64,000 bases of DNA from Epithemia pelagica (GCA_946965045.2 OX337238.1:2666001-2730000), one strand, 5' to 3'; numbered from the stretch's first letter, positions 2,656 to 57,641 are shown. The notes: generated from the letters alone by a model not told the origin. Made by a program: numbers and translations.

Positions 2656-5567
2656 TCAATCTGCATATCCAAGAAATTCCTCCCATTTGCACATACGATG
2701 CTCCAATTGTTCAAACTTTGTTTGAATCCGTTCATCGAAACTGCGTTTGGCCTTGAGTTCATCCACCAGTGACGAAACAGACTCTTCCAAGCGTGTCATT
2801 CGTTCAACTAGTGAGGTAGCATGACAGCCTTCCTTCGTTTCTAGTTCCCCCACGAGCGACGCGACAGATTCTTCCAGTCGAGCAATTCGTTGGACTACCG
2901 GTGTGGCTTGACCACCTCTCCAAGTTTCAATTAAACGAGATGAAAAAGAACTCCTACTGGATCCAGAATCTTTCAAAGGACTAGTCTTGACGATTTTCGG
3001 AGCCATGGCCGAGGAATGCTCTCTACCCCGAAGACTCAGGGATTTCATATTCTGTTCATGTTTGACAGATTCTGCCACCGTTTGTGTCATTTTGGTCGTG
3101 ACCACCAACGCCAACAAACTGATTGCCTCGGCATTATCAGGAGCATCTTTCTCATCAATGCATTTTGCATCACGAGTCCATTTCATTACTTCATTGGCAA
3201 AATGGCCAATCACAGTCGCCAATACACTGCTTCCAGCTTTGGTTTGCTCTCTCATCGCCTCATCGTCACGTTTCAAAGACAACTGCTTTATTGATTTTTG
3301 GACGACTGCAATTCCCTGTTGAAAAGCAGTTTGAAACTTCTCGTTACCAGTTTGCTCCACGACCGAACGAATATGGTTCACGTCTCCATAGTCAACAATC
3401 TCGTGAAGCAAAGAACAACCGACGGTTTCAGACGAAACCCTCCCAAATATAGTTTGGCCGAATGACAATGCATTCAAAATCGAGCAAATGGCCGCAGTGG
3501 ACGCTCCGTCATCATCGTGAGCTTCTATTGCATCATGGAGCTCCTTCAGAGATCTCCCCAAAGCTTGCGCCTGTGCAAGAACAACACGGTGAACAATGCT
3601 ATCACTTTGTGAACTATTTGGAGTTGTCTGGGATTGCGTTGGGGTTCGCGGGAGGACCTCTCCGACTCGAAATTCAATCATGGATAGATTGCTTGCCAAC
3701 GAAGACACTGGTTCTGTCATAGTTGCCACAGAATCTGCGTAAAAGCTGGCAATGCCATTGCCATGAATGAGGATACCATCCTGCCGACATTTCTCAACAA
3801 TCTTTCCTTGCATTGCCATTAGTTGTGAGTCACTCTTACAGATGGTCTTCGATAACTCCTGGAGCGCTTTCAATGTGTATCGTTGTCGATCATCTTGCGA
3901 TATGTGTTGGGAACGGTACAGGTGATTCAGAAATGTGTAAAACACTTTCATTTGGTGAATGTTTGAGACCAGAAACGCCAAGTCGTGGACCTTGAAGACA
4001 ATATCGTCAGAGTAAGTATCCACAAGTTTCCTGTAAAAGGTATCCTCCAACACTTCAGAATCACCGTCTCTCGTCGATCCGACAGAGCGACCAGGAGGCT
4101 TCCTCTCATTATCGGTGACCCCATTCAGTTCAAGAAGCGACTTCAAGTGTTGAACTTTTCTACCCATTGGAATTCTGTCTTGAATATCCTTCATGTTTTG
4201 AATCGTAGATGTTAGCTTATCAATCTCCTCTTGAATTTGTTCCACCGACCGGAATTTTTCATCGTCACAGAGTAATTCCAAAAACGGCAGTAAGGATTGT
4301 GCTTTTGCACCCTCTTGCAACACCGTCACATCGTCGTCACTGTAGTCAACAACAGCCCTTGCCCGTTCAATGGCATTGTTGAGTTTTTCCATTTCCGTTT
4401 CTAGTTCCGCTCGACACGAATACAGGTTCTGCAATATACAAACGGTAAGATTCCAGATAGTGCCAAGCTGTCCCGAGTGCAGTAATGCACGCAGACTAAA
4501 CGAACCTTGAGTTGTTCTTTCTTGTCAATCAACAATAGTGTCTCACATGAATCGACATTTTGACCACCAATCACAGCAATGCCAGTTTTGAAGGCCACCA
4601 TGCTAGCATAATTACGTCCCGTGGATAATGCTGGAAGGTTCCATACAATCCCACGTTCCGTATCCAAAACCTCCACCGTAGCAATCGATCCACTGTAATT
4701 TCCTGACACAATGATACAGGATCCAACTGACACAACTGCATGAAAACTACGTGCGACAGGTAGAGCTAGCTCTGTGCAATTTGTCCACACTGACGACGAG
4801 GAAAAGACTGTAGCAGCAGTCTTCTTGGTCGCATAATCAGAAATCTCCTCGAATTGCAAAGACTCAACCGATGTCAACGCATTGCTACCATTGTGTCCGC
4901 CAACGACATAGATACGGTGACCAATGACAGCACTAGCAAAACCATAACGAGGACCTGTCATGGATGGCCCCGCAATCACAGTGTGGTTGCTTTCCACAGC
5001 TGTATCGATTATATCAACCGACGACAAAGAGTGTCCGTTGTGTCCACCCATGACGACGATATAACGATTGTACACGACAACAGCCGAACAACCCTCTCTT
5101 GCCGTAGACAATCGACAATTCAAGGTTGTCCATTGGTTGGTGGTAGAGTTTGCCAATGACCCTGAAGACAAAGTTTCAACATCGATACGTTCAATACTAT
5201 TCAAGGATGAACCATTGAATCCTCCAATCACATAAACTCCTCCATTACAAACCACCGCAGCATGACAGCATCTCCTGTTGTTCAACGGCGGTCCTTCCCG
5301 CCATTGCTTATTTTCTTCTGCCAAATTCATCAGCAGAACTGAGTTGGTGTAGCCTTGACTGTTATTGTATCCTCCCAAAAATACAACCGTCTGTGCCCTG
5401 TCATCCTGTTCAGGATGGTCGAGCACAACCGACGCATGCGAACGACGCCACCCACCCAAAAGGGGAGGCCAGTCGTTGGTATTCCAATGAGGCGCAAGAC
5501 TGTTATTGTCACTGTCCATAAAGCAAAGCCCGGATTGCTCTGCTTGTCGTTGCAGTGTCATCGTCAT
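2656..5567 (-). CDS. Kelch propeller fused to a ~590-aa helical/coiled-coil tail (K1); exons 5567-4506 and 4428-2656, ~944 aa
   Basis: Six Kelch blades (GG..W pattern) starting MTMTLQRQAEQSG. A phase-0 77-bp intron GTTCGT..TTGCAG (4505-4429) joins DKKEQLK to NLYSCRAELETE in frame. The same intron position recurs in copy 2. Confidence 0.85.
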
Positions 5568-5837
5568 GGTACTTGCAGATTTTATAGCAACACCAAGGAG
5601 TCTTCGTCTTTTTCCTCTAAACCTCAGAAAATACGAAAATATGGGAATCAACGAATGGACTGAATATTCTGGACCGTTTGTACCAAAACCGGAACGAAAG
5701 ACGGCAGCACCTCTACGGCGGCGATTTCAATCATGGATCATGGTATCTTTCACCAGTGGATGGCCTTGGACAGATGAACGGGTCCAAAACCATCCACGAA
5801 AAAGCCACTCCAGCAGAGAATCCACGAACGCTGACAA

Positions 5838-6080
5838 TGTTGAGGATATGTGACCAGGCGACGAGTAGCAGCGAGCAAGCCGCGACTAAAGAGAGTGATT
5901 CGGAAGCAAAGGATCCAAACTTGAATGATGAAGATGCCGAAGCATGGACTTTAGTCCGTCGACGTGGCAAAAGCAACATTAGGCAAGATGAACAAGCAAG
6001 TGTTCATTCTAAGGAGATTACGTAGTTCGATAAGCCTATAAAGAGTTGCTTTTACGGCACGGCTTGTTTGAGTTTTAACA
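5838..6080 (+). repeat. Outer element 5' LTR (243 bp)
   Basis: tgttgagg..ttttaaca, with no difference seen from 20252-20494. Confidence 0.97.
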
Positions 6081-6140: not shown

Positions 6141-6833
6141 ATGAGCGATAGACTTGAAGCTCGTTGGCAAGATATATTGGCTCAATTGGCTCAGCTGACT
6201 CTCGAGGAACAAGAAGAAGTACACGCAATTGAAGAGCGCTTTCAACAAGAATACCGAAGAAGAGAAGCTCAACACCGTCAAACGGTGGCGGCTCTTGAGC
6301 GTCAACGAGAAACGGATCGTGACAACGCGTACGACGAGTGTGAGATTCGGAAGCAACTTGTGTTTGAAAAAGCTCAGGCAAAACGTGACAACTTGTTACG
6401 AGAAATTCAATCCCTTGACGACAACACACCTGTCCCAGAACCCCGGTCAGCTACACCGGATCCACCTCAACCATCAAGGCAGTCGACGCCCGAACCAGAG
6501 GTAAAACAGACAACTGGACAGGCAAATCAACAATCAAGATCCCAAAACAGTACGCCTCAACCTCAAGCAAGTGGTACAAGTCATCCAGTGCAAGTCCCAC
6601 AGCCTCCTTCAATCGCATCGCAAAGAAACAGCCCCATAAGGTGGATCCCAATTGGAACCAGAGTGTGGGTACTCAATCCCCTCAAGTTGAAGAATCAAAC
6701 TTCCACTACCTATCTTGAAGGAATCATATCGCGACACGGTAGCTTCTACCACTTCCTTTGTATTTGGAATCCATCTACCGGCAAACACGAAGAACATCGT
6801 CGACACCGAGACAGTCTAGCTGTAATCGAATAA
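6141..6833 (+). CDS. Extra ORF upstream of gag in the outer element (coiled coil, P/Q linker, small beta domain), 230 aa
   Basis: ATG-started ORF between the PBS and gag; it stops 1 nt before the gag ATG. Confidence 0.65.
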   Translation: MSDRLEARWQDILAQLAQLTLEEQEEVHAIEERFQQEYRRREAQHRQTVAALERQRETDRDNAYDECEIRKQLVFEKAQAKRDNLLREIQSLDDNTPVPEPRSATPDPPQPSRQSTPEPEVKQTTGQANQQSRSQNSTPQPQASGTSHPVQVPQPPSIASQRNSPIRWIPIGTRVWVLNPLKLKNQTSTTYLEGIISRHGSFYHFLCIWNPSTGKHEEHRRHRDSLAVIE

Positions 6834-6834
6834 G

Positions 6835-9800: not shown

Positions 9801-9960
9801 ACTTGACGACCTAAACGGTCCGGAAATTGAAGGAGTGGAGGCAGATGGAGAACTGCCAATCCATCCTATAGCAGAAGATGATGTTGGTGCAGTCCCGGAG
9901 GAGGCAGTGATGGATGTGGAGGAGGATGTAGAGGAGAATGGGGGGGGGGGGGGGAGCTAG
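6835..9960 (+). pseudogene. gag-pol: Outer gag-protease-integrase region with an in-frame TAG at 7684-7686
   Basis: RGG-rich gag N-terminus, protease LLLDNQST, integrase VDIL..LADGAF..GDIERYIRTVKER. ORFs 6835-7686 and 7693-9960 share one frame. The frame then shifts at a G15 run (9940-9954). Confidence 0.85.
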
Positions 9961-9974
9961 CCGGTGGAGAGGAT

Positions 9975-10635
9975 ATGGAAGAGGGACAAGAGATTGACGC
10001 TAATGAAGGTACCGACGATAACAGCGAGGCTGATCCGGTACTACAACAACAACAACAACAACAACACAGGTACAATCTACGGCCAAATCGTGAAAGGAGC
10101 TATGCGCACCGATACGGGCACTCGTTTGCCTGCATCGATACTCTAAAAGGAGGGCGCTATGATGGAATCCTTCGAGATGGAGTGTTGTTTCTTGTAGCGA
10201 GTGAGGTAAATCAAGCCACACCGCAGATGCCTATGAAGAAGGGCATCAAACTGTTTGGAAACAAGGGAGTGGCCGCCGTGAAGGTGGAAATCCAACAATT
10301 GCATGATCGAGGAGTATTGAGGGCAGTACACAAAACTGACCTCAGCTGGAATGAGGTGCAACAAGCACTAGGCTACCTAATGTTTTTGAAACGAAAACGG
10401 TGTGGCAAGATAAAAGGACAAGGCTGTGCCGACGGACGCAAACAACGCGCGTACATAGACAAGGAAGATTCAGCTTCTCCTACCGTGGCCACCGATTCGG
10501 TATTCATCACTGCCGTCATTGATGCCCTGGAACGACGTGTGGTTGCGGTGGCAGACATCCCAGGTGCGTTTATGCACTCGGACATGGATCCTGGCGTGTA
10601 TATGCGGCTTACTGGACTAATGGCTGAGCTACTCC
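9975..10635 (+). pseudogene. pol: Outer RT, 5' part (interrupted by the inner element)
   Basis: KIKGQGCADGRKQR and DIPGAFMHSD motifs. Removing 10636-19024 restores MAELLLEVDYEAYAPY..KALYG. Confidence 0.9.
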
Positions 10636-11418: not shown

Positions 11419-11429
11419 GATTAACAGTC
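11419..11429 (+). promoter_or_regulatory. Inner element PBS complementary to the tRNA-Asn(GUU) anticodon arm
   Basis: gattaacagtc is the reverse complement of GACUGUUAAUC, the anticodon stem-loop sequence of eukaryotic tRNA-Asn. It abuts the LTR end. Confidence 0.6.
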
Positions 11430-21320: not shown

Positions 21321-22235
21321 ATGAGCCTGACACTGAAAGAACAAGCATGGCAGTCAGGCCTTGTCCTTTTCGACGAGACGGCAGCATGGAATGAAAACAA
21401 CTGGCCTCCTCTCCCGGGTGGATGGCGTCGCGATCATACTACAGTCGTACTTGATCATCCTGATACGGACAACGACAAAGACAACAAGAGACAACAAATT
21501 GTCGTCGTGTTGGGCGGATATGGTCAAGGCGAGCTCGATTCCATTTTTGTATTGAATTTATCAGACCCAAACAAACAGTGGCGAGAAGGTCCGCCCATGA
21601 GCAAGAAACGTGACGAACTTGCCGCTGTTGTCTGCAATGGAGGCATTTACGTGGTGGGAGGATACAGTGAAGGTTCATGTTTGAGTTGCATGGAGCGGAT
21701 TGATGCCAATGATTTGCTGCAATCATCTTTAACAAACAGCAACACAAATGAGAGCCATTGGACGACATTGAATTGTCGCTTGTCAACGCGACGACGAGCA
21801 TGTCGAGAAGTTGCGGTTCACAACCAATATATTGTTGTAGTGGGTGGCTACAACGATTGCTATTTGTCGTCGGTGGATATTATTGATACCACCAGGAACC
21901 ACACTGTCACTGCGGGACCGTCCTTGACTGTTCCACGACGATGGTGTTCCAGTGCGGTCGTTGTTCAACGCATCTTTGTCGTTGGAGGCCATGACGAGGA
22001 TGCCTATCTTGCTGTGACAATGATGAGATCAAAAGGGAGACTGATTCCACATTCATTTCTTTCTCGTCCACCTGGATGACTCATTCTGATTTGGTGCTTT
22101 CCAATGCACGAAGTTCTTGTGCAATGGTTGCCGTGGGATCTTGTCTGGTGGTGGCGGGAGGAAGAGGTAATTCAACCGTGGAAGTATTGGATCCGTTTCG
22201 AATGGTCTCAGTTTCGGGAAGGCATGGGTATCGGA
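21321..22235 (+). pseudogene. Divergent plus-strand Kelch pseudogene (K2)
   Basis: Starts MSLTLKEQAWQSGL with four blades in frame. It frameshifts near 22010; blade 5 (ARSSCAMVAVGSCLVVAGG..VEVLD) continues in another frame and then breaks off. Confidence 0.8.
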
Positions 22236-22896
22236 GATGCTGATATTTCACGCTTTTGCACCTCGACATCCTCTCGTAAAGGAGCAAAAGGCCCAAGACG
22301 CGCCCTGGTGATTAAGGAAAACATGAATCCAGAAATGTGCAGTACTCCTACATTGCATTTATGTCCTGCAATGGAGAAGCTATAGCATAATCATTTTGTT
22401 TTCCAACACTTTTCTTGTTTTTATGACATCGTTAACTATTGAGATATCATGTCTTCGTTGTACTACCTACAAAAAATGAAATGTTACAGCGTCTGGCAGG
22501 ACACTGCCATCCTCCGCAAACAGGAGTGGAGCCTGGCTCTTGGGTGCATGTCCATGGTACCATGCCTCTCTGTGCTGTTGAATGGGTCGAGTTATCGTGC
22601 TGTGGAACATCATGGTTGTGCGCCTAAAACACTACTCCTACCTACTCCTACCAAAACTAAAGACAAGGTGTTTTACCACATAGGGTAGACAACCTAGCAT
22701 GTAGATCCATCTGCGACCACCTAAAAGATTTTCGCGGTTCAGCCTTTGAAAGTGCGACCTCAATTCTGATAGATCGATCGTCTATTTCATAGGAGTATTT
22801 CAGCTGCCGCGGTTCATCTCCATGTTGAAAGAAGAGGTAGACTTGATCGTAGAGAACCTTTCTTTATAAGAGAATCGCCTTGTCAGCTAAATTGTC

Positions 22897-23715
22897 ATGG
22901 CAGATCGTCATCGCCTTGATGAAGACGCCGAGGGCTTCGAAGAGGATTTCGATGACGCAGACGACGAAGCATTCCCTCATATTCAACAGTACTACGCATC
23001 GTTGACTCCAGATTTGCGAGATGGATACTTCGATACTCGCCTTGCCAACTTTCACGAAGGCGTGAAGCTGCCGGAAGAGCGATATTTTTGCTCTAGACCC
23101 AAGTCACTAGCCTACCTCAACGATGGTCCCCGAAAGACTCCAGCAGACCACCCGCTGCGAGCGATCGCTTGGGTCCTTGAATCTGCTCCGCCCCATTCGG
23201 TGGTGCGAGTTTTTTGTTACTCGCTGACCGATCCGATAGCGATCGATTTGATTGTTCATGCCGGATCGTCGCGTGAGGTCAAAGTTATCCTTCATCCAAA
23301 TGACAAAAGTAGAAGAGCACTGGAAGAATATGTCGATCAACATGGCAAAAGCGCCTTTCTCGAAAACGTGGAAATGCGTCTGGCAAACCTAACCGGTGCC
23401 GATTGTGAATCAAGCAAGGTCCAAATGCACGACAAATCAATTATTACGGAAACCTACTCCGTTTTTGGCAGTTACAACCTGTCAAGCTTTGCTCGTGTGG
23501 GCAATTGGGAGTCGGTGTGTGTGGTTGATACACCTGCCAAATGTCAGGTAACCTTTGACAGCATCTGGGACAACATTTCCCATCGACAAGTCGAACACTA
23601 CTACACCAATTTGCAGAGCTCAGTAGTAGGACCTCGACGACGAGCTCGTGCATCGGCGCGAGAAGCAGAGGATGCGCGGAGACGACAAGCTGCAAGAAGC
23701 CGTGAAGATCTGTAG
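22897..23715 (+). CDS. Single-domain PLD/Nuc-like nuclease, copy 2
   Basis: Same length and catalytic motif as 798-1616, with about ten amino-acid differences. Confidence 0.8.
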   Translation: MADRHRLDEDAEGFEEDFDDADDEAFPHIQQYYASLTPDLRDGYFDTRLANFHEGVKLPEERYFCSRPKSLAYLNDGPRKTPADHPLRAIAWVLESAPPHSVVRVFCYSLTDPIAIDLIVHAGSSREVKVILHPNDKSRRALEEYVDQHGKSAFLENVEMRLANLTGADCESSKVQMHDKSIITETYSVFGSYNLSSFARVGNWESVCVVDTPAKCQVTFDSIWDNISHRQVEHYYTNLQSSVVGPRRRARASAREAEDARRRQAARSREDL

Positions 23716-23840
23716 AAAATTGTTGAAATGACTGACAGGATTGCCAAATTTCCTCATGTTACAGCAATTTCTCAAGAGATAATGCGCTTGTGTCCTTTGA
23801 CTGTAGTTGCTATGGGTTTCGCTAAAAAGCCATCGAAATT

Positions 23841-24590
23841 ATGGGATATCAGTTACATGTCGCATCTTCTAAAAGCTATCACTGCACGACGCAAAAGTGG
23901 AATGGTTGTTGTGTCACGAATCCATCCCTCCTCATTCCCATGCTGGTAGAAGAAGAACCTGCGTATCAAGAAGCAGTGCAAGTCGAGGCCGAAGTGGAAG
24001 TTGACCCTTCCGGACAAGCTTCGTATGTTCCACCACAATATGAAGATGCCATTCAAGCGCCTGTCATTTATGTTCCAAGTTCCCACGTGACCTTGGGTGG
24101 TACCAAAGTAGATGGTGCCGCCGAAGATCCAGACCTTGAAGTAGATGTACAACTTCCATCGGATGTTGAGGCACAGCCACCTTCTCTCAAAATACTACTC
24201 AAGGAAATGTCGGAATCGGTGGCCGATTGGGATATCATTCAACGCAAACTCCAGGATCCCGACTGGGATACCATTTTTGCCACACTCACGCCCAATCACT
24301 ACGCCCTTATTTTACAGCAGGTGGCATTGGATTTCGATCAACCCAAAATCGCTGCCTGTCTCGCACAAACACTACAACAACAAGGTGCTGATTCTTTAGG
24401 CTTTACCTGTGCCCATGTGGTGGCTGCGTTGAACGTGGCTTCGGAATGGAATCGAGCGACAGTGGTGGAAAAAACCATTTCGTATTGTTCCGATTTGGCA
24501 ACCAACCAAGATCAGATTCTTTCTCGGTTGACAGACTGGGAGAAGTTGGTGACCGAACGTGCCTTTGCCAAAGCATTGGATGTGACCTAG
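23841..24590 (+). pseudogene. 5'-truncated alpha-arrestin, copy 2
   Basis: Paralog of 1742-2488 with the PPQY motif. Confidence 0.7.
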
Positions 24591-24757
24591 TTTACTTACT
24601 AATATATGTGGTAGATCCCACTTTCTGATATTGCTTGGTGCACGTAAATGCCAAACTCATGATAGAAGTCTTTTAGGAATACTGGTAAAAGATTGACAGA
24701 ACAACATGGCCGCACGGACCCGTACTTCATAAACGGCTCTTGATGGAAGGAAAAGAT

Positions 24758-27669
24758 TCAATCTGCATATCCAAGAAATTCCTCCCATTTGCACATACGA
24801 TGCTCCAATTGTTCAAACTTTGTTTGAATCCGTTCATCGAAAGTGCGTTTGGCCTTGAGTTCATCCACCAGTGACGAAACAGACTCTTCCAAGCGTGTCA
24901 TTCGTTCAACTAGTGAGGTAGCATGACAGCCTTCCTTCGTTTCCAGTTCCCCCACGAGCGACGCGACAGATTCTTCCAGTCGAGCAATTCGTTGGACTAC
25001 CGGTGTGGCTTGACCACCTCTCCAAGTTTCAATTAAACGAGATGAAAAAGAACTCCTACTGGATCCAGAATCTTTCAAAGGACTAGTCTTGACGATTTTC
25101 GGAGCCATGGCCGAGGAATGCTCTCTACCCCGAAGACTCAGGGATTTCATATTCTGTTCATGTTTGACAGATTCTGCCACCGTTTGTGTCATTTTGGTCG
25201 TGACCACCAACGCCAACAAACTGATTGCCTCGGCATTATCAGGAGCATCTTTCTCATCAATGCATTTTGCATCACGAGTCCATTTCATTACTTCATTGGC
25301 AAAATGGCCAATCACAGTCGCCAATACACTGCTTCCAGCTTTGGTTTGCTCTCTCATCGCCTCATCGTCACGTTTCAAAGACAACTGCTTTATTGATTTT
25401 TGGACGACTGCAATTCCCTGTTGAAAAGCAGTTTGAAACTTCTCGTTACCAGTTTGCTCCACGACCGAACGAATATGGTTCACGTCTCCATAGTCAACAA
25501 TCTCGTGAAGCAAAGAACAACCGACGGTTTCAGACGAAACCCTCCCAAATATAGTTTGGCCGAATGACAATGCATTCAAAATCGAGCAAATGGCCGCAGT
25601 GGACGCTCCGTCATCATCGTGAGCTTCTATTGCATCATGGAGCTCCTTCAGAGATCTCCCCAAAGCTTGCGCCTGTGCAAGAACAACACGGTGAACAATG
25701 CTATCACTTTGTGAACTATTTGGAGTTGTCTGGGATTGCGTTGGGGTTCGCGGGAGGACCTCTCCGACTCGAAATTCAATCATGGATAGATTGCTTGCCA
25801 ACGAAGACACTGGTTCTGTCATAGTTGCCACAGAATCTGCGTAAAAGCTGGCAATGCCATTGCCATGAATGAGGATACCATCCTGCCGACATTTCTCAAC
25901 AATCTTTCCTTGCATTGCCATTAGTTGTGAGTCACTCTTACAGATGGTCTTCGATAACTCCTGGAGCGCTTTCAATGTGTATCGTTGTCGATCATCTTGC
26001 GATATGCGTTGGGAACGGTACAGGTGATTCAGAAATGTGTAAAACACTTTCATTTGGTGAATGTTTGAGACCAGAAACGCCAAGTCGTGGACCTTGAAGA
26101 CGATGTCGTCAGAATAAGCTTCCACAAGTGTCCTGTAAAAGGTATCCTCAAACACTTCAGAATCACCGTCTCTCGTCGATCCGACAGAGCGACCAGGAGG
26201 CTTCCTCTCATTATCGGTGACCCCATTCAGTTCAAGAAGCGACTTCAAGTGTTGAACTTTTCTACCCATTGGAATTCTGTCTTGAATATCCTCCATGTTT
26301 TGAATTGTAGATGTTAGCTTATCAATCTCCTCTTGAATTTGTTCCACCGACCGGAATTTTTCATCGTCACAGAGTAATTCCAAAAACGGCAGTAAGGATT
26401 GTGCTTTTGCACCCTCTTGCAACACCGTCACATCGTCGTCACTGTAGTCAACAACAGCCCTTGCCCGTTCAATGGCATTGTTGAGTTGCTCTATTTCCGT
26501 TTCTAGTTCCGCTCGACACGAATACAGGTTCTGCAAAGTATACAAACGATAAGATTCCAGATAGTTTCAAGCTTTCCCGAGCGCAGTTATACCTGCAGAA
26601 TACAACGTACCTTGAGTTGTTCTTTCTTGTCAATCAACAATAGTGTCTCACATGAATCCACATTTTGTCCACCAATCACAGCAATGCCAGTTTTGAAGGC
26701 CACCATGCTAGCATAATTACGTCCCGTGGATAATGCTGGAAGGTTCCATACAATCCCACGTTCCGTATCCAAAACCTCCACCGTAGCAATCGAGCCACCG
26801 TTATTTCCTGACACAATGATACAGGATCCAACTGACACAACTGCATGAAAACAACGTGCGACAGATAAAGCTAGGTCTGTGCAATTTGTCCACACTGACG
26901 ACGAGGAAAAGACTGTAGCAGGAGTCGTCTTGGTCGCATAATCAGAAATCTCCTCGAATCGCAATGACTCAACCGATGTCAACGCATTACTACCATTGTG
27001 TCCTCCAATAACAAAAATGCGATCACCAATGACAGCACTTTCACAACCAGACCGAGGAACTATCATGGATGGCCCCGCAATCACAGTGTGGTTGCTTTCC
27101 ACAGCTGTATCGATAATATCAACCGACGACAAAGAGTGTCCGCTGTTGTACCCACCCATGACGACGATATAACGATTGTACACGACAACAGCCGAACATC
27201 CATATCTTGGAGTAGACAATCGACAATTCAAGGTTGTCCATTGGTTGGTGGTAGAGTTTGCCAATGACCCTGAAGACAAAGTTTCAATATCAATACGTTC
27301 AATAGTATCCAAGGGTCTTCCATTGTGTCCTCCAATCACGTAAACTCTTCCGCTACAAACCACCGCAGCATGATAGCCTCTCTTGACGTTCAACGGCGGT
27401 CCTTCCCGCCATTGCTTGTTTTCTTGTGCCAAACTCAACAACAAGACGGAGTTGACATAGCCTTGACTGTAATTGTATCCTCCCAAAAATACAACAGTCT
27501 GTGCCGTGCCATCCTGGTCGTCAACCACGATTGAAGCATGATGCTGACGCCATCCACCCAAAAGGGGAGGCCAGTCATTGACATTCCATTGCGGCACATC
27601 ACTGTGATTGTCACTATGGACAAAGGCAAGCCCGGACTTCTGTGCTTGCTGTTGCAGTGTCGTCATCAT
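24758..27669 (-). CDS. Kelch plus helical-tail fusion gene (K3); exons 27669-26611 and 26530-24758, ~943 aa
   Basis: An 80-bp phase-0 intron GTACGT..TTGCAG (26610-26531) joins KEQLK to NLYSCR. The tail is almost identical to that of K1. Confidence 0.85.
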
Positions 27670-27830
27670 GGTTCCAAACCCAACTTGCAGATTTTATGGC
27701 AAGGAATGGAATGGACCTCAGCCTCAGTTCTCCTCAAAACCCGAGAACAAACGATCCTGTGGCCTGTGGCCTTCAATGATAAATGACGAAGGACGGACGG
27801 ATTGACCGCTCCTTACTATCGAACGGAATT

Positions 27831-28290
27831 AGATCATGACCAAGTGCTGGCCTCCAGAAAGATGTTCGGCCAGTTCAAATTGCGGATCGCAGCCGCTTGG
27901 AACCAGAAGGTCCTCTCAGTGTCTAGTTTGCACCACCACATTTAATATATTACCGAAGGAATGGAGTCCATCCAACAAAAGAAATGACGATTGCAAGAAA
28001 GCCCATCCAAAGTTCGGACCATTGATTGTGCAGCCGTGAAATCCAATAAGGTAGTGCAGTATACCTCTCCTATCGAGCTGAACAAAACGGAATAAGATCA
28101 TGACCAAGTGCTAGTGGTGGCCTCCAGAATGGTATTCGGCAAGTCCGGATTGCGGATCGTAGCCGCTTGGAACCAGAAGGTCCTCTCAGTGTCTAGTTTG
28201 CACCACCACATTTAATATTTTACCGAAGGAATGGGGTCCATCCAACAAACGAGAAGACGATTGCCCCCCCCCCCCCCCAACTTCGGACCA
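27831..28290. repeat. Local imperfect tandem duplication (~265-bp period)
   Basis: agatcatgaccaagtgct..cctccagaa..gcggatcg.agccgcttggaaccagaaggtcctctcagtgtctagtttgcaccaccacatttaatat occurs twice. Confidence 0.85.
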
Positions 28291-29932: not shown

Positions 29933-31081
29933 TCACTTCGTAGGGCGCTCATCGCACTCCTTCACGACTGTAGGATGATTTGGAGCAGATCCCAGTGAGT
30001 TTGTTCTTGACCCAAAGAGTGATCTTGGCACCTGCTCCATGAGTCGACAAAAACACTGCGTATTCTTGTCAATCAAGGATAGTGTCGCACAATCACTTCC
30101 ACCAATCACAGCAACTCCCCTCGAGTGAACCACAACACCGTGGACATATTCTGGACTTGTTGATGGGGGAATGGTCCACACAGTGTTTCGGCGAGTATCC
30201 AAGACTTCTTCGTTAGTCAAGTAACCTCCCACAACCATCAGACATGATCCAACAGCTACAGCTGCATGATCACTCCGTGGGACGGAGAGCTCGAGCTCGT
30301 GACTTGTCCAACGGCAAGAGGATGGAAACACTGTATTTGCTGTGTTCATTGTCTCATTGCCCGAAGCATCATGAAACTCCAAATACTCCACCGATGCGAG
30401 CTCATAACCATTGAAGCCTCCAAGAACAAAAATGCGGTGGCCAATGACAGCACTAGCACATCTACACCGGGGAACTGTCATGGATGGCCCTGAAATAACA
30501 ATGTGGTTGCTTGGCACAGATGTATCAACAATATCAACCGACGACAAGTAGTTTCCGTTGGATCCACCCATGATCACAATGTAACGATTGTAGACGGCAA
30601 CAGCCGAACATCCACTTCTTTTCGTAGACAATCGACAACTCAAGGTGGTCCATTGGTTGCAGGTAGAGCTTGTCAATGACTCTGAACACAAATCTGCGAC
30701 AGCAATGCGTTCCACACTATCCAAATTTGAGTTTCCATTGGATCCTCCAATCACGTAAACTCCTCCGCTACAGACCACGGCGGCAGGATACGCTCGGTTG
30801 TTGTTCAACGGCGGTCCTTTCCGCCATTGCTTGTTTTCTTCTGCCAAATTCAATAGCAGCACTGAGTTGGAGTATTGTGTGTATCCTCCCAAAACTACAA
30901 CTGTCTGAACATTGCCATTCTGTTCGGGATGGTCGAGCACGACTGAAGCATGATTCTGTCGCCACCCACCCAAAAGGGGAGGCCAGTCAATGACATTCCA
31001 TTGCGGCACATCACTGTTTTGGTCAAGGTCGACAAAGGCAAGCCCGGACTGCTCTGCTTGCTGTTGCAGTGTCGTTATCAT
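29933..31081 (-). CDS. Stand-alone six-blade Kelch protein (K4), 382 aa
   Basis: Conserved leader MITTLQQQAEQSGL, six GG-containing blades and tail CATLSLIDKN. Confidence 0.9.
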   Translation of the reverse strand: MITTLQQQAEQSGLAFVDLDQNSDVPQWNVIDWPPLLGGWRQNHASVVLDHPEQNGNVQTVVVLGGYTQYSNSVLLLNLAEENKQWRKGPPLNNNRAYPAAVVCSGGVYVIGGSNGNSNLDSVERIAVADLCSESLTSSTCNQWTTLSCRLSTKRSGCSAVAVYNRYIVIMGGSNGNYLSSVDIVDTSVPSNHIVISGPSMTVPRCRCASAVIGHRIFVLGGFNGYELASVEYLEFHDASGNETMNTANTVFPSSCRWTSHELELSVPRSDHAAVAVGSCLMVVGGYLTNEEVLDTRRNTVWTIPPSTSPEYVHGVVVHSRGVAVIGGSDCATLSLIDKNTQCFCRLMEQVPRSLFGSRTNSLGSAPNHPTVVKECDERPTK

Positions 31082-32939: not shown

Positions 32940-34184
32940 TCAAGAGATCACACAGCAAGAGATCACACAGACGGTCAACCTTCTGGTCGAGAAATGGCTT
33001 TTCTTCGGGTGGTCATCCGACTCCTTCAATTTCTGTAGTACGCCCTGCGGAAAAGTTCTTGACCCAAAGAGTGAACTTGGCACCTGTTCAATGAGTCGAC
33101 AAAAACACCGCGTATTCTTGTCAATCAAGGATAGTGTCGCACAATCACTTCCACCAATCACAGCAACTCCCCTCGAGTGAACCACAGCACTGTAGATATA
33201 TCCTGGTCTTCCTGGTCGGGGAACGGTCCAGACAGTGTTTCGGCGAGTATCCAACACTTCGTCATACTCCGCGAGTGTCGAACCTCCTAGAACCATCGAA
33301 GTGCAACCTCCAAGAATCATCAAACAGGATCCAACAGCTACAACTCCATGATTAGTCCGTGGGATGGAAAGATTGAGTTGGTCATGACGTGTCCAACGGC
33401 ATGAAGATGGAAAAACTGCACTTGCTGTGTTCATTGTCTCAGTGCCTGAAGGATCATGAATCTCCAAGAACTCCACTGATTGGAGCACTTCTTCATTGTG
33501 CCTATTGTAGCCTCCAACAACATAAATGCGGTGGCCAATGACAGCACTTCCACAACCACAACGAGGGACTGTCATGGATGGTCCCACAATCACAGTGTGG
33601 TTGCTTGCGATAGCTGTATCGATCATATCAACCGACGACAAAATGTTTTCGTTGGATCCACCAATCACGACAATATAGCGATTGTGCACGGCAACAGCCG
33701 AACATCCACTTCTTCTCGTAGACAATCGACAAGTCACGGTCGTCCATTGGTTGCTGGTATAGCTTTCCATTGATTCTGAACAAAGCTTTGCAACATCAAT
33801 CCGTTCGATTTTATCCAATGGTGAACTTTCATTCCATCCTCCGATCACGTAAACTCCTCTGCCACAAACCACCGCAGCATGAAGTCCTCTCTTGTCGTTC
33901 AATGGCGGTCCTTCCCGCCATCGCCTAGTTTCTTCTGCCAAATTCATCAGCAGAACTGAGTTGGTGAAGCCTTGATTTTGTATGCGTCCTCCCAAAACAA
34001 CAACCGTCTGTGCCCTGTCATCCTGTTCAGGATGGTCGAGCACGACTGAAGCATGATACTGACGCCACCCACCTAAAAGGGGAGGCCAGTCATTGGTATC
34101 CCAATGTGGCTCGTTACTGTTATTTTCACTGTCCAGAAAGCAAAGCCCGGATTGCTCTGCTTGCCGTTGCAGTGTCATCGTCAT
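32940..34184 (-). CDS. Stand-alone six-blade Kelch protein (K5), 414 aa
   Basis: Same architecture as K4; intact ORF. Confidence 0.9.
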   Translation of the reverse strand: MTMTLQRQAEQSGLCFLDSENNSNEPHWDTNDWPPLLGGWRQYHASVVLDHPEQDDRAQTVVVLGGRIQNQGFTNSVLLMNLAEETRRWREGPPLNDKRGLHAAVVCGRGVYVIGGWNESSPLDKIERIDVAKLCSESMESYTSNQWTTVTCRLSTRRSGCSAVAVHNRYIVVIGGSNENILSSVDMIDTAIASNHTVIVGPSMTVPRCGCGSAVIGHRIYVVGGYNRHNEEVLQSVEFLEIHDPSGTETMNTASAVFPSSCRWTRHDQLNLSIPRTNHGVVAVGSCLMILGGCTSMVLGGSTLAEYDEVLDTRRNTVWTVPRPGRPGYIYSAVVHSRGVAVIGGSDCATLSLIDKNTRCFCRLIEQVPSSLFGSRTFPQGVLQKLKESDDHPKKSHFSTRRLTVCVISCCVIS

Positions 34185-36521: not shown

Positions 36522-37688
36522 TTATGCCAATGTCAAGTCGTTCTTGGAACCCAAGCGATACCATCCGTTTGGCTCCATGTTGCAGAGTCGACGAAAGCAC
36601 CACGTGTTCTTGTCCATCAAGGGCAGTGTCGCACAAGAATCATTCCCTGATCCACCAATCACGGCAATTCCATTCAAGAAAGTCACAGCACTGCAACACC
36701 AATATTCAGCTGGTACTCTCGGGAGCTTCCACACCAAGTTCCTGTAAATATCCAAAACTTCTTCATCCCCGTGTTTATCATGACCCATAGCAAGCAAACA
36801 TGATCCCACAGGCAAAACATGACTTTTCCTGGGTACGGAAAGCTTCATGTTTGGGAGAGTTGTCCAAGCGCAAGATGAGGGGAAAACTCCTGCTGCAGTC
36901 TCTCTGGTATCAATGCCAGACGAGTGCTGGAACTCCAAATACTCCACTGAGTTGAGTTTTTCTAAACAATATCCATCCCAGTAGTACCCTCCAACAGCAA
37001 AAATGCGATGACCAATGACAGCACTTCCACACACTGCCCGAGGAATTGTCATGGACGGTCCCACATGGATGGTGTGGCTGTTTTGGACTTTCGTATCGAT
37101 AATTTCGACTGACGACAAACAATTTCCATTGTCGGTTCCCCCCATGACGACAATGTATCGATTATACACGGCAACAGCCGAACATTCATCTCTTGCCGTT
37201 GACAACCGACAATTCAAAGTTGTCCAAGGGTTCCCAGTAGTAGTAGTGTTCGTCGAGTACGTTTGCAACAAATTTTCAACATCAATGCGTTCGATACTCT
37301 TTCCCAATCTTGTCGAATAATCGCAATCTCCTCCCATCACATAAACACCTCCGTTACAGACCACTGCTGCATGGCAGGCTCGGTGATTGTTCAACGGCGG
37401 TCCTTCCCGCCACTGCTTGTTTTCTTCTGCCAAATTCAATAACAGAACTGAATTGGCATGGTAGCCGTCATATTGGTTGTATCCTCCCAGAACTACAACC
37501 GTCTGTGCATTGCCACTCGTTTCGGAATGATGATCCAGCACCACCGATGCATGCCAACAGCGCCCTCCATCCAAAAGAGGAGGCCAATCACTGGAATTCC
37601 ATCGTGGTGTATCACTGTTGTTGTGTGGGTCGTCGGAAAAGACAAGCCCCGACTCCCATGCTTGTTCTTGCAGTGTCATCCGCGTCAT
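36522..37688 (-). CDS. Stand-alone six-blade Kelch protein (K6), ~388 aa
   Basis: Start inferred at MTRMTLQEQAWESG by alignment to paralogs; tail LPLMDKNTWCFRRL. Confidence 0.88.
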   Translation of the reverse strand: MTRMTLQEQAWESGLVFSDDPHNNSDTPRWNSSDWPPLLDGGRCWHASVVLDHHSETSGNAQTVVVLGGYNQYDGYHANSVLLLNLAEENKQWREGPPLNNHRACHAAVVCNGGVYVMGGDCDYSTRLGKSIERIDVENLLQTYSTNTTTTGNPWTTLNCRLSTARDECSAVAVYNRYIVVMGGTDNGNCLSSVEIIDTKVQNSHTIHVGPSMTIPRAVCGSAVIGHRIFAVGGYYWDGYCLEKLNSVEYLEFQHSSGIDTRETAAGVFPSSCAWTTLPNMKLSVPRKSHVLPVGSCLLAMGHDKHGDEEVLDIYRNLVWKLPRVPAEYWCCSAVTFLNGIAVIGGSGNDSCATLPLMDKNTWCFRRLCNMEPNGWYRLGSKNDLTLA

Positions 37689-51054: not shown

Positions 51055-52266
51055 CTACGTCTCAGATTTGCCAGTTAATAACTTCTTCTTAGGGCGCTCA
51101 CCGGACTCCTTCAATGCTGTAGTATGCCCTGGAGTAAATCGCAGTGAGTCTGTTTTTGTCTCAAAGATTGTACTCGGCACCTGCTCAATGAGTCGACGAA
51201 AACACCACGTATTCTTGTCAACCAAGGAGAGTGTCGCACAAGAAGCATTGTCATCTCCACTAATCACAGCAATTCCCCTCGAGTGAACCACAGCAGTGGA
51301 GAGATAACGCGGCCCTGTTGATCGTGGAAAGGTCCACATAGTGTTTCGGCGAGTATCCAAGACATCAACAGTGTCCGGGGCTGAGAAACCTCCCATAACA
51401 ATCAGACATGATCCAACAGCTACAACTGCATGATTATTCCGTCCGATGGAAAGATTGAGCTTGTCATGACGTTTCCAGCGGCATGAGGATGGAAACACTG
51501 TACTTGATGTGTTCATTGTCTCATTGCCTGAAGGATCATGAATCTCCAAATACTCTACTGAGTCCAGATCTTCTCCATTGTGCCCAATTTCGCCTCCAAC
51601 AACAAAGATGCAGTGGCCACTGACAGCACTAGCACATCCAGACCGCGCAACTGTCATGGATGGTCCCATTATCACAGTGTGGTTGCTTGCGATAGCTGTA
51701 TCGATTATATCAACCAACGACAGATCGTTTCCGTTGTATCCACCCATGACGACAATATAGCGATTGTGCACGGCAACAGCCGAACATCCATTTCTTCTCG
51801 TAGACAATCGACAAGTCAGGGTCGTCCATTGGTTGCTGGTAGAGCTTTCCATTGATTCGGAACACAAATTTGCAACATCAATCCGTTCGATACTATCCAA
51901 GCATGAACTTCCATTCCATCCTCCAATCACGTAAACTCCTCCGCGACAAACCACCGCAGCATGACAGCCTCGGTTGCTGATCAACGGCGGTCCTTCCCGC
52001 CATTGCTTTTTTTCATCTGACAAAGTCAACAACAACACTGAGTTGGTGTAGCCTTGATCTTGTTTTTCTCCTCCCAAAACAACAACCGTCTGTGCATTGT
52101 TATCCTGTTCGGGATGGTTGAGCACAACCGATGCATGCAAACAACGCCATCCACACAAAAGGGGAGGCCAGTCATTGGTATTCCATTGCGGTGCCTCACT
52201 ATTATTGTCAACGTCCAGAAAGCAAAGCCCGGATTGCTTTGCTTGCTGTTGCAGTGTCATCGCCAT
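51055..52266 (-). CDS. Stand-alone six-blade Kelch protein (K7), ~403 aa
   Basis: Start inferred at MAMTLQQQAKQSG; intact ORF. Confidence 0.88.
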   Translation of the reverse strand: MAMTLQQQAKQSGLCFLDVDNNSEAPQWNTNDWPPLLCGWRCLHASVVLNHPEQDNNAQTVVVLGGEKQDQGYTNSVLLLTLSDEKKQWREGPPLISNRGCHAAVVCRGGVYVIGGWNGSSCLDSIERIDVANLCSESMESSTSNQWTTLTCRLSTRRNGCSAVAVHNRYIVVMGGYNGNDLSLVDIIDTAIASNHTVIMGPSMTVARSGCASAVSGHCIFVVGGEIGHNGEDLDSVEYLEIHDPSGNETMNTSSTVFPSSCRWKRHDKLNLSIGRNNHAVVAVGSCLIVMGGFSAPDTVDVLDTRRNTMWTFPRSTGPRYLSTAVVHSRGIAVISGDDNASCATLSLVDKNTWCFRRLIEQVPSTIFETKTDSLRFTPGHTTALKESGERPKKKLLTGKSET

Positions 52267-53263
52267 CGTACTTGCCAACACCCAGGAATGGACCTCAGAG
52301 TTTCGTCTCCTCAAAACCCCAGAAAAAACGAAAATGTGGCCTTCAGCGCCAGGCATCAACGGATGGACCGGAACGAAAGACGGCTGCAACGGCGGACGAA
52401 CCTCTACGGCGTCGATTTCCATCATGGTATCCTTCATCGGATGGATGACCTTGGACAGATGAACGGGTCCAAAACCATCCACGAAAACAACTACTTCGAA
52501 ACAAATCCAGATATTTCACGAACGCTGACAATCCCATTTCGAACGAAGCTTGGCCTCACTGGAACCCATTTGTCACTGAATCGGTAATAGTGCTCGTCCG
52601 TTGCAGTCTTGAGGCCCTTCTCGAAATTCTTCTGGATGTTTTGCACACACTACAACAGCATCGCAGCCAAACGCTCTTTCATCGTCCAGGGGGCATGAGT
52701 CAATGTTGCTCCGTCTCACTGTTGAATTGAATGGGAAATGGATCTCATCAAGGGAATCCCGAGAGTGTTGTGGCACTCACAATCCTGCCGATTTTCAGAG
52801 AAAGAGATGTGAGGTACATCACGTTTTTATAGAAACGATTTGAATTTGTTGTAAACTTCATCGACACATTGTCCTGCTGCGCAAATCATGCCCATGTCAA
52901 ATGAACGTAGATGCGGAAGCGCCAACGACGCATTCGAGCCGATTGGGCGCGGTGCATCGGCTTTAACAAGCACGTTCCTTGTAATAAAACCAAGATCTGT
53001 TCCGGGAAGAAGTTCCAGACGGCATCATGGTCAGAGCTTCCAACGAAGTCTCCATTCGTCGGAACAAAACGACAAAAAGATATGAACAACAGAGAAGAAA
53101 TTTGGCGCGTATGAAGAGCGACTGAAGACTGCTCGAGAAGGATTGAGTGATGTCGAGAAAATAGATCTATTGTTGGGAACAACAAAGACCAAAGACACAT
53201 TAACACTTACCATCATGACATATGTTCATAAAACTTGACAGTCAACTATTGAAGAAATCGAAC

Positions 53264-54504: not shown

Positions 54505-55922
54505 TTACCATTCACGAAGCAAATTTTGTTCCTGTGCTTCGGCAAAGGCACGCTTAGTCACCAACTTTTCCCAGTCTGTCAATTGAGAAAGAATCTGGTC
54601 TTGGTTGGTGGCCAAATCGGAACAGAAGCAAATGGTTTTTTCTACCAGTGTCGATCGATGCATTTTCGAAGCAACTTTCAAAGCAGCCACCACATGGGCA
54701 CAAGTAAAGGTTGAAGAATCGGAACCTTGCGGCTGTAGTGCTTATGCAAGACAGGCAGCAATTTGGGGTTGATCAAAAAACAATGTAACTTGTTGCAAAA
54801 TGAGGGCGTACTCATCAGGCGTCAGTTCGGAAAAGACAACATTAGACCAGTCGGGATCCTGGATTTGCGTTCAATAATGTCCCAATCGGCGGATCTCGAC
54901 ATTTCCTCCAAAAGAACTTTGAGAGAGGGTTGTTTTGCAGCAACATCCGATGGCACGAGCACCGATTCTTGTACATCTACTTCAATGTCTTGATCCTCGG
55001 CGGTATTATCCACTTTTGTACCGCCCATACTCACGTGGGAACGTGGAACATAAATCACAGGCGCTTGAATGGCATCTTCGCACTGTGGGGGAACATACGT
55101 CGCTGGTCCTGAACCGACGACTTCCACTTCTGCCTCATCATCGTCGTTTTCAGCTTCTTCTTGATTTGAAGGTTCTTCTTCGACCAGCAGGCAAATTTGA
55201 AGCGATGGATTGGTGAAAAAGCGACCGGACGTGGATACTTCCAGTTCCAAAAGATGTGATATGGTAATGATTCCACCGAAGTAGGAACACAGCCGGAGTT
55301 AGTACCGGAAACAGTACGGGGAATGGTAAAGGTTGCGGAATGGCGAGCATAGATGAGTTCGCGAAATATTTCTTGCAACTCCCATGAAATGTCCTGAGCT
55401 TGTTGTACGGTCTTGCTTTGCGTGGCCAAACTGCCTTGGCACAGCAAAGGTAGGGTAAAGTCCATGGACAACAGAGATTGTGCCCTACTCCGTGCATTGG
55501 AACAGGCTTTCCAACTGAATCTTTGTAGCAAGGTGGCCTTGACGGAATCAATTTCTTTCGCCGAATGATTGCGACACGAAATATTGATCCGGCAGTCTTG
55601 ACCTTTGTGCACACGAATATTGTCAAAGTTTGCTGCCCTCGATGTAAACACTTGTTTCTTCCTTGCCATGAAAGGTGATATCCAAGGCCGAGGCCAACAC
55701 ACCCTTGGGATCGTTGACGATTTGTACCACAAATCCTTGTATCGACTCACCGGCCTTGGCAACGGCAATCAAAGGGGCTACTGCTGTATTTTCTCCTTCT
55801 TCGCCGTCTTGTCGTTTGCAGCGAGCTTGTCGTCTTCGTTCTATTTCTTTTTCTACAGGCGACAAGGGTGCCTCCATGGATGGATGATCTGGAAAGAGAA
55901 TGAGTAATTCAACCTTCTTCAT
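54505..55922 (-). pseudogene. Alpha-arrestin with an internal deletion and frameshifts
   Basis: Same MKKVExLILFPDHP start as 40914. It jumps from FHGKEET to AANFDN (about 0.6 kb missing), PPQY has become PPQC, and there is a further frameshift at ERK/IQDP. Confidence 0.8.
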
Positions 55923-56435
55923 GGTTCTTTTGTGCTTGTTGATCTCTAGTAGTACCTGGGGGTAGTTTTTGACGAGCAAACCAATTTGTGTGCATCGTCC
56001 TGAGAGTTTTGTCTCGTGGAGGACTGTTCACTCGCGATTTTGGGCGCTCTTCATGGAGACGTGTGGTGTCATCGATCGTTCTCATCATCATGGTACGTTA
56101 CCGGTGCGTGTGAGTCGTTCTGATGACTATCTACACCATTGTTGTGTTTTTATCTTTTCTGTTTGGTATCTTCCTTGCGAATTGCGAAGCGAGAATTTCG
56201 ATGTCCATGTGGTCGCGCTTAGAAGTCGCGCATACACTTTTCCTGTCACGAGTAAGTCCCGTTTCGATTCACGACTAGACAATTTCCGCGACTGAAGCAT
56301 TCTGGATTTTCTCTTCCGAGTTACCTACCTACCTACCGGTAGTTCTTGCATTCTTTGTTCGCAAGAAACCCGAGAACAACAACACCAAACAGGCACAAAG
56401 CCAAGAACAAACCCGGTGATTCAATGTAGTACATT

Positions 56436-57641
56436 TCAATTCTCGTTGGTGATATCATTGCATGAATTTGTCTTTGCACGTCCAGGAGCTAATGCCACGG
56501 TGTCGGGTAGTTCTTGGAACCCGCGGGGATACCATCCGTTTGGCTCCTGATGGCAGAGCCGACGAAAGCACCACGTGTTCTTGTCCATCAAGGGTAGTGT
56601 GGCACAAGTCTTGCACCAGAATGCAGTCATCACGGCGATTCCATTCCAGAAAGTCACAGTACTGCTGTCAACATTAAATAGGGCTGGCATTTTCGGGAGC
56701 GTCCACACAATATTCCGGTTGATATCCAAAACCTCTGCATCCCCGGTTCCAGCACATCCACCCACAGCAACCAAGCATGATCCCAGAGATACAACACGAG
56801 TTTGCCTTGGTGCGGAAAGCTTCATGTCCGCGAGAGTTGTCCAAGCGCAAGATGGGGGGAAGACTTCTGCTGCCGTCTCCGTTGTTTCAATCGCAGATGA
56901 CTGCTGGAACTCCAAGTACTCCACTGATGTCAGATATTGATCATCATTCCTGTTGCAACCTCCAACAACATAGATGCGATGACCAATGACAGCACTTCCA
57001 AACTCTTCCCGAGGTATTGTCATGGACGGTCCCACAATGACAGCGTGGTTGCTTTGGACTTTTGTATCGATAATATCAACTGACGACAAACAATTTCCAT
57101 CGCCGGTTCCTCCGATGACGACAATGTATCGATTATACACGGCAACAGCCGAACATGCAGTTTTGGGGGTAGATAATCGACAATTCAAAGTTGTCCAATG
57201 GTTCCCAGTAGTGCTCGTTGAGTACGTTTGCAACAGTTCTTCAATATCAATCCGCTCAATAGTGTCCAAGCGTGAATTTCCAATGGAACCTCCAATCACG
57301 TAAACTCCTCCGTTACAAACCACCGCAGCATGTAAGCCTCTCTTGTCGCTCAATGGCGGTCCTTCCCGCCACTGTTTGTTTTCATCTGACAAACTCAACA
57401 ACAACACTGAGTCGGTGAACAGAATACGATGGTTGGCTCCTCCCAAAACTACAACCGTCTGTGCACTGTCATCCTGTTCTTGATGGTCTAGCACCACCGA
57501 TGCATGACTGTAACGCCACCCACCCAAAATGGGAGGCCAGACGTTGAAGTTCCATTGTGGTACATCACTGTTATTGTCCATGTCATCGGAAAAGACAAGC
57601 CCCGACTGCCATGCTTGTTCTTGCAGTGTCATGAGTGTCAT
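56436..57641 (-). CDS. Stand-alone six-blade Kelch protein (K8), 401 aa
   Basis: Starts MTLMTLQEQAWQSG. It is the same subtype as K6 and shares its upstream block. Confidence 0.9.
   Translation of the reverse strand: MTLMTLQEQAWQSGLVFSDDMDNNSDVPQWNFNVWPPILGGWRYSHASVVLDHQEQDDSAQTVVVLGGANHRILFTDSVLLLSLSDENKQWREGPPLSDKRGLHAAVVCNGGVYVIGGSIGNSRLDTIERIDIEELLQTYSTSTTGNHWTTLNCRLSTPKTACSAVAVYNRYIVVIGGTGDGNCLSSVDIIDTKVQSNHAVIVGPSMTIPREEFGSAVIGHRIYVVGGCNRNDDQYLTSVEYLEFQQSSAIETTETAAEVFPPSCAWTTLADMKLSAPRQTRVVSLGSCLVAVGGCAGTGDAEVLDINRNIVWTLPKMPALFNVDSSTVTFWNGIAVMTAFWCKTCATLPLMDKNTWCFRRLCHQEPNGWYPRGFQELPDTVALAPGRAKTNSCNDITNEN

Follow-up and report, generated by a model that had tools for sequence, protein, structure and literature searches.

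The question raised by this locus is why eight Kelch genes lying close together share a fixed scaffold and differ from each other at a few recurrent positions. The genes lie in a 64,000 nucleotide stretch of Epithemia pelagica DNA (GCA_946965045.2 OX337238.1:2666001-2730000, referred to here as the window, with positions counted from its first letter), which a model reading the sequence alone had proposed to be a variable-receptor locus (the original prediction). We found that the observation is real and that its interpretation is in part supported, and we put the probability that these genes are part of a variable Kelch recognition repertoire at roughly 60%. ORF listing and Pfam identified eight Kelch open reading frames (ORFs), K1 to K8, all where they had been predicted. 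All eight copies matched Kelch_1 (E 1e-18 to 3e-34) and, again as predicted, BTB, BACK and F-box domains were found in none of them by Pfam at E up to 0.01. The leader before blade 1 is only about 44 residues long, the Kelch proteins have no signal peptide and they are presumably cytosolic. In the alignment the GG and R columns were invariant or near-invariant across copies, and the variable strings quoted in the original prediction were all present, for blade 1 (RRSH, RRDH, RQHH, RQNH, RQYH, RCWH, RCLH and RYSH), for blade 4 (RYGF, RRWC, RSGC, RCRC, RCGC, RAVC, RSGC and REEF) and for the length-variable loops after GG (YTQY, YNQYDGYH, DCDYSTRLG and YYWDGYCLEK).

Seven of the eight copies are intact. 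The C-terminal CxTLxLxDK claimed for all eight, along with a common leader and core strands, was present in these seven; it is missing from K2 because this copy is broken and has lost blade 6 and the tail. The K2 ORF (21165-22079, plus strand; ORF listing and Pfam) overlaps a pseudogene-like remnant at about 21321..22243 (plus strand), and three-frame translation placed a frameshift or deletion near 22025 with a stop soon past blade 5. The gene call for its counterpart on the other haplotype contig, described below, is also short at 249 amino acids (aa). The ORF extents that were scanned with Pfam differ from the modelled gene or exon bounds for K1, K2, K3, K6 and K7. For K6, a stand-alone propeller, the ORF spans 36522-37931 and the 388-aa protein from the conserved Met spans 36522..37688 (both minus strand; ORF listing and Pfam).

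The fold was modelled using K5 (32940..34184, minus strand), a 414-aa stand-alone propeller identified by ORF, Pfam, AlphaFold2 (AF2) and Foldseek. The AF2 model (predicted local distance difference test score (pLDDT) 82.9, predicted template modelling score 0.83) shows a propeller of six blades, with a helix (5-11) and a strand (14-16) at the N-terminus and a helix (356-367) at the C-terminus. Foldseek returned KLHL12, KLHL3 and KEAP1 at E 1e-18, VIA returned KLHL and KEAP1 Kelch domains at Z 31-32 with a root mean square deviation of 1.8, and the best structural matches overall were KLHL12, KLHL3, KLHL17, KEAP1, LZTR1 and KLHDC3, KLHDC10 and KLHDC2. The window proteins are therefore best described as predicted Kelch-repeat beta-propellers (PF01344 clan), closed and built of six four-stranded blades.

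In KEAP1 the D-A and B-C loops make up the substrate pocket, and the listed contact residues recur every ~47 residues (PMC12314335). Across 108 members of the family examined here, the most variable columns of the whole protein were the two positions that follow each conserved Arg and the first residues that follow each GG, with the C-D loops moderately variable. A separate clade of 64 sequences gave the same picture, with 26 of the 30 most variable sites by entropy in B-C or D-A loops. The ~47-residue period of KEAP1 would correspond to the R+1/R+2 and GG+1/+3/+6 positions, and variation appears to peak at these KEAP1-equivalent contact positions. Diversification is focused on the canonical binding face, as the entropy map and the published loop assignment (PMC12314335) bear out for the predicted placement of the variation on the Keap1/KLHL substrate-binding face.

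Selection was measured on 33 unique full-length coding sequences (CDS), consisting of 7 from the window, 4 second-haplotype alleles and 22 from other arrays. For the window copies compared with each other, synonymous divergence was 0.19-0.97 and therefore unsaturated, and whole-gene omega (dN/dS) was 0.36-0.68. Our own codon likelihood reproduced the IQ-TREE M0 log likelihood of -14696.21 (kappa 1.64, omega 0.58). Omega was then estimated for each class of codons by maximum likelihood (ML) on the 33 CDS with a class-specific synonymous rate and tested against omega = 1. Strands were the most constrained class (115 codons, omega 0.30, p 5.5e-50), followed by the leader (33 codons, omega 0.53, p 5.2e-05), the opposite-face loops (75 codons, omega 0.61, p 1.7e-07) and the rest of the top face (96 codons, omega 0.68, p 1.2e-05). 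The contact set, defined as R+1, R+2 and GG+1 to GG+4 (36 codons), gave omega 1.41 (likelihood ratio test (LRT) 7.4, p 0.0065) and R+1/R+2 alone (12 codons) gave omega 1.96 (p 0.008). Contact-set omega was 1.53 with window-only sequences (p 0.053) and 1.84, 1.48 and 1.20 under three segment-specific trees.

Individual sites were assessed using an M1a/M2a-type comparison in which the M0 branch lengths were kept except for a common scale. This resulted in an LRT of 198 with 10.5% of sites at omega 2.9. Twenty-nine sites had a posterior above 0.8. The B-C/D-A loops contain 26 of them, the leader two and a strand edge the remaining one, and none of the 75 opposite-face loop codons was selected; the variable sites were not scattered off the top face, an outcome that would have counted against the original prediction. 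Enrichment of selected sites in the B-C/D-A loops was strong (odds ratio 20, p 2e-10; p 3.6e-6 when compared to opposite-face loops). Six segment-specific trees gave LRT values of 17.8-43.4, significant in every segment, with 27 of 30 sites on the same face, and sites picked in 21 non-window paralogs had omega 3.5 in the window-only set (p 6e-6).

Copy number and alleles were compared using a second contig of the same assembly, ctg1253l, which is syntenic with the window at 92-99% identity and is most simply the other haplotype. Both differed between the two contigs. K8 is a 401-aa stand-alone propeller (56436..57641, minus strand; ORF and Pfam), and an 879-bp stretch at 56322-57200 holding its C-terminal two thirds is absent at the syntenic place on ctg1253l (L004 5667/5668); a 319-aa K8-like protein occurs elsewhere on ctg1253l and was not placed. 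This contig also carries an extra K7-like copy relative to the window. The K4 haplotype allele is 95% identical at the protein level. K7 (ORF 51055-52482; 403-aa stand-alone propeller from the conserved Met at 51055..52266; both minus strand; ORF listing and Pfam) differs from its allele at 71 sites, nearly all within CDS nucleotides (nt) 480-960 (index of dispersion 5.9), and in this interval the two alleles resemble different distant paralogs, with 97-100% identity over 60-100 nt. K1 is a chimera: its 5' part is K5-like, the 350 nt upstream included (83% identity), and its 3' part is K3-like. The copies are homologous from ~300 nt before the start codon to the stop, with unrelated spacers between. 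Pseudogenes and gene fragments occur often in the arrays, among them K2 and the short or split Kelch ORFs of the loci L005, L006, L008 and L010. Alleles on both haplotype contigs are mosaic, pieced together from paralog tracts. The clustered allelic differences, the K1 chimera, the homology limits and the fragments therefore indicate birth-and-death with short-tract ectopic gene conversion.

The eight genes are a small part of a larger family. A K5 query matched 575 clusters at 90% identity, and the best 120 of the 575 (E below 1e-93) were all from the ENA assembly ERZ21939226; an exhaustive search of 50%-identity representatives gave ~120 clusters with E below 1e-30. Among sampled clusters, 19 of 20 were confined to large ENA contigs, frequently in pairs of contigs (the sample accessions were not looked up), and more Kelch arrays were found on the window's own contig ctg1337l (1.09 Mb) and on other contigs. 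The window genes are thus the local members of a family of several hundred copies seen mainly in one genome. Outside the ENA assembly these searches returned only two matches from a JGI metagenome scan, at 26-27% identity, and one protein from SRA data. The latter is a 468-aa Kelch protein 39% identical to K5, carried on ~1.5 kb transcript-like contigs (L013-L015) in SRR26379917, SRR26379919 and SRR26379920, and it has several of the motifs of the family core, namely the leader SGL, WTTL..RLS, RYIVVIGG and GPSM..PR. A literature search found no paper describing such a Kelch family.

Expression was evaluated using run X4. This run has no depth in unique intergenic DNA, where DNA-like runs have 60-130, and has depth over K3, the K3 helical exon described below and K4 (382-aa stand-alone propeller, 29933..31081, minus strand; ORF, Pfam and X4 depth). 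It contained 0.74 of the sampled words of K5 as compared to 0.30 for a 4.3-kb stretch spanning K4, K5 and the DNA between them. We read X4 as RNA because its depth is genic only and because it contains a GT-AG joint. From these data we concluded that at least K3, K4 and K5, or near-identical alleles, are transcribed; these were the three copies examined, so that transcription of the copies is borne out for three of the eight.

The GT-AG joint changed the model of two genes. One X4 contig joins 26530 to 26611, skipping 80 nt with the ends CT..AC, which is GT..AG on the minus strand, and this joint is absent from all three DNA-like runs. The K3 ORF (26587-27669; ORF listing and Pfam) therefore gives way to a first exon of 353 codons encoding the propeller (26611..27669; ORF, Pfam and X4 coverage), an 80-nt intron (26531..26610) and a second exon encoding a 590-aa helical domain (24758..26530; ORF, X4 and fusion homologues), all on the minus strand, and splicing puts the propeller in frame with the downstream 590-aa ORF. 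K1 (ORF 4401-5651, minus strand; ORF listing and Pfam) has the same organization on the same strand, with a six-blade propeller of 354 codons in exon 1 (4506..5567; ORF and Pfam), a 77-nt GT..AG intron (4429..4505) aligned to the K3 intron, for which there is the spliced contig, and a 590-aa helical/coiled-coil domain in exon 2 (2656..4428; ORF, no Pfam match). The donor (CTCAAG|GT), the acceptor and the reading frame are all kept between K1 and K3. K1 and K3 are not stand-alone propellers; a GT-AG intron joins each to the 590-aa helical domain. The domain had 17 matches, all from this genome and including the query's own cluster, and 3 of the 17 are uninterrupted ORFs containing both Kelch and the domain (991, 965 and 675 aa), which supports the fusion independently. 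An AF2 model of one natural fusion, P0146 (pLDDT 70), showed the propeller, long helices, a helical domain at 512-833 and C-terminal coiled-coil-like helices. No Pfam family and no Atlas lead was found for the 590-aa domain, and a VIA wide search with the fusion model returned Kelch matches only and none for the helical part.

Several points weigh against a variable recognition repertoire and in part against the data used to argue for it. The faces were assigned from strand order and not from 3D coordinates (B-C and D-A loops on one face, A-B and C-D loops on the other), and the contact set was fixed after the entropy map had been seen. The pairwise homoplasy index test detected pervasive recombination (z -9.1, p below 0.001), and pervasive recombination inflates tree-based site tests. 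In 13 independent sister pairs contact-set omega was 1.12, not different from 1, and 30 independently chosen hypervariable sites gave a pooled pairwise omega of 1.02, also not different from 1, as compared to 0.51 elsewhere. Site-wise fixed effects likelihood, run with site-specific synonymous rates, selected 13 top-face and 9 opposite-face sites at p below 0.1 and was low-powered and not face-specific. For expression, the kind of run that X4 represents is not on record, and its contigs are mostly 95-99% alike and therefore may come from paralogs or alleles.

The best surviving alternative is neutral birth-and-death, in which the top-face loops are merely unconstrained (omega about 1) and there is neither adaptive diversification nor a repertoire function. 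The pairwise values of 1.02 to 1.12, the common pseudogenes and fragments (K2; L005, L006, L008, L010) and the inflation of M2a-type tests by recombination all favor it. Neutral drift would not, however, account for the composition of the selected sites. Up to 18 different residues occur at these sites across paralogs, and the composition is strongly non-neutral, with Tyr at 11% (0.8% in opposite-face loops; 3.5 times the codon expectation), Trp at 3.6% (0% in opposite-face loops; 2.3 times the codon expectation) and few Val, Ile, Leu, Met and Lys residues. A Tyr/Trp-rich and aliphatic-poor composition is typical of protein-binding hot spots. The ML estimates for the contact set (1.41) and R+1/R+2 (1.96) also argue against drift, as do the survival of the M2a signal under six segment-specific trees, the omega of 3.5 at the cross-validated sites and the constraint on opposite-face loops, which are of similar length and stand at 0.61. 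In the sister pairs, too, omega of the contact set clearly exceeded that of the opposite-face loops (0.62; odds ratio 1.98, p 4e-4) and of the strands (0.32). We therefore regard neutral birth-and-death as unlikely. Pocket omega is firmly about 1 or higher, which is two- to fourfold the value in any other class; a pocket omega above 1 is likely and not proven, because the recombination-robust pairwise counts give only 1.0-1.1. The rapid diversification claimed from dN/dS consequently held for loops above core and for omega above 1 in the tree-based tests, and did not extend to the pairwise counts.

A second alternative is that these proteins are ordinary cullin-RING substrate receptors with a docking motif in the N- or C-terminal helices, expanded to serve endogenous turnover and not non-self recognition. 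The closest structures are indeed those of substrate receptors (KLHL12, KLHL3, KEAP1 and KLHDC3/10/2), the N- and C-terminal helices are conserved and could dock an adaptor, and adaptive evolution is known for the large ligase-adaptor families of plants and nematodes. We judged this alternative distinctly unlikely, as Pfam found no BTB, BACK or F-box, none of the 33 copies had the BC-box pattern [STP]Lxxx[CSA]xxx[AILV] in its leader or tail, the 590-aa helical domain of K1 and K3 is unlike any ligase module found, and several hundred copies with copy-number differences between haplotypes would be unusual for housekeeping adaptors. A third, that the Kelch units are selfish cargo riding mobile elements with variability as a by-product, is suggested by the Copia and hAT elements interleaved with the arrays and by the conserved upstream module common to the copies, and is highly improbable given that homology stops ~300 nt upstream of the start and at the stop with unrelated spacers, that flanking terminal repeats were not noticed (though without a dedicated repeat search) and that strands and leader are under clear purifying selection (0.30 and 0.53).

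Together these data are most consistent with a variable Kelch recognition repertoire, which could work as follows. The fixed scaffold consists of a helix and a strand at the N-terminus, six blades kept under purifying selection and a strand and a helix at the C-terminus, and the variable part is a D-A/B-C pocket that differs between copies and has many Tyr, Trp and Arg residues. Diversity is supplied by the processes shown here, namely tandem and segmental duplication, gene loss and short-tract ectopic conversion between paralogs, and variants would likely, though this is not proven, persist through diversifying selection on pocket residues. Of the recognition repertoire in the original prediction, the focused diversification and the haplotype polymorphism stood, and recognition itself we infer: the family may function as a repertoire of binding specificities, and binding would be coupled to a common downstream partner by the constant elements at the two termini or, in the K1/K3 class, by the 590-aa domain. 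Candidate ligand classes would be pathogen, mating or endogenous substrates.

The genes next to the Kelch copies match the earlier description in Pfam, with two PLD-like (PLDc_2) genes, a vWA-alpha-kinase and one arrestin with N and C domains plus one partial copy. Two blocks of the window are copies of one segmental duplication. The first (697..5570; comparison with L003) holds a PLD-like gene, ORF248 and the Kelch-helical gene K1, and the second (22199..27994; PLDc_2 E 2.7e-8) holds a PLD-like gene, ORF249 and the Kelch-helical gene K3. L003 13189-18059 is 99.1% identical to the second block and matches window 697-5570 at 96.2%. The PLD-like genes, at 798-1616 and 22897-23715 (plus strand), have a single HxK(x)4E...GSxN motif. 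The cluster to which they belong at 90% identity numbers 17 members, with short Logan and JGI contigs among them, so that the PLD-like gene, unlike the Kelch genes, is present in other public data.

The original prediction had linked the Kelch repertoire to the adjacent nuclease, arrestins and alpha-kinase. In the other Kelch arrays, fetched from several contigs, the PLD-like, arrestin and alpha-kinase genes showed no recurrent association, and the neighbors were JmjC, hAT, DUF659 and Copia. Because the neighbors of the other arrays differ, a functional link is unsupported and we rejected a system of Kelch, nuclease, arrestins and alpha-kinase.

Other features of the window were also recorded. 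The partial arrestin copy (55055-55768, minus strand) is a diverged duplicate of the C-terminal half of the intact gene (39619-40914, minus strand) and had no Pfam match at E up to 0.01. At 41547-44357 (plus strand) there is an ORF of 936 aa that is of low complexity, has a hydrophobic segment close to the C-terminus and is separated from K6 by the arrestin gene; its counterpart on the other haplotype contig (L004 16150-18864) is head-to-head with a Kelch gene. An adhE gene (aldehyde-alcohol dehydrogenase, 45097-48300, minus strand) is split by introns, and a 346-aa Cys/Leu/Trp-rich ORF on the same strand (47254-48294) is probably spurious. Ty1/Copia-type retrotransposons are nested at 6141-20439, the outer element having gag-pol ORFs at 6141-10700 and 19090-20439 that are interrupted by the inner element, which has a 1895-aa polyprotein ORF at 12555-18242. 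On ctg1253l (L003 1163-5908) a retrotransposon with gag-bearing ORFs of 995 and 580 aa lies beside K5' and is absent from the window counterpart.

A more specific version of the recognition repertoire is possible, and we offer it tentatively: an innate-immune or allorecognition repertoire of a protist, with several hundred germline-encoded Kelch receptors whose Tyr/Trp-rich pockets are reshuffled by conversion and which would signal via the N/C handle or the 590-aa domain. Repertoires of repeat proteins that diversify on one face recur, as leucine-rich repeats in plants and lampreys and as WD40 repeats in fungi. If true, the immune or allorecognition reading would make this family an analogue of the NLR, VLR and fungal WD40 repertoires on a scaffold not known in such use; a Kelch repertoire of several hundred copies, found in a microbial eukaryote, would extend the list by both a new scaffold and a new lineage, and would give an entry point to how such protists recognize viruses, bacteria or mates. 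The locus is also a clean natural example of mosaic alleles driven by gene conversion, and a constant scaffold with a variable pocket may be of interest for binder engineering.

Among known systems, KEAP1 and the KLHL proteins (BTB-BACK-Kelch) share the six-blade Kelch fold, and the variable sites found here are at the D-A/B-C loop positions that form the KEAP1 pocket (PMC12314335). They differ in that the present proteins have no BTB or BACK, just the 44-aa leader, and form several hundred arrayed paralogs with a hypervariable pocket. The KLHDC2/3/10 CUL2 receptors likewise have no adaptor domain before the propeller and a short helix after it (VIA Z 27-29), and differ in that no BC-box or Cul2-box pattern was present in any of the 33 copies here. 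KLHDC proteins are also few and conserved. The plant F-box-Kelch proteins and the F-box and MATH-BTB adaptors of nematodes and plants are large lineage-specific tandem families with positive selection reported in the substrate-binding domain, whereas the present family has no F-box or BTB, is from a protist and shows prominent mosaic gene conversion. Membership in the BTB-Kelch, F-box-Kelch and KLHDC classes fails because the defining adaptor modules were not found. The fungal NLR-like HET-E/D/R 'nwd' WD40 proteins are beta-propellers hypervariable on one face, shaped by recombination or conversion and positive selection, and are proposed to act in non-self recognition. They differ from the present family in using WD40 and not Kelch repeats, in their NACHT and HET fusions, which are absent here, and in that shuffling takes place between repeats within a gene in the fungi and between paralogous genes here. 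The nearest known kinds of system are the ligase substrate-receptor expansions and the fungal WD40 non-self repertoires.

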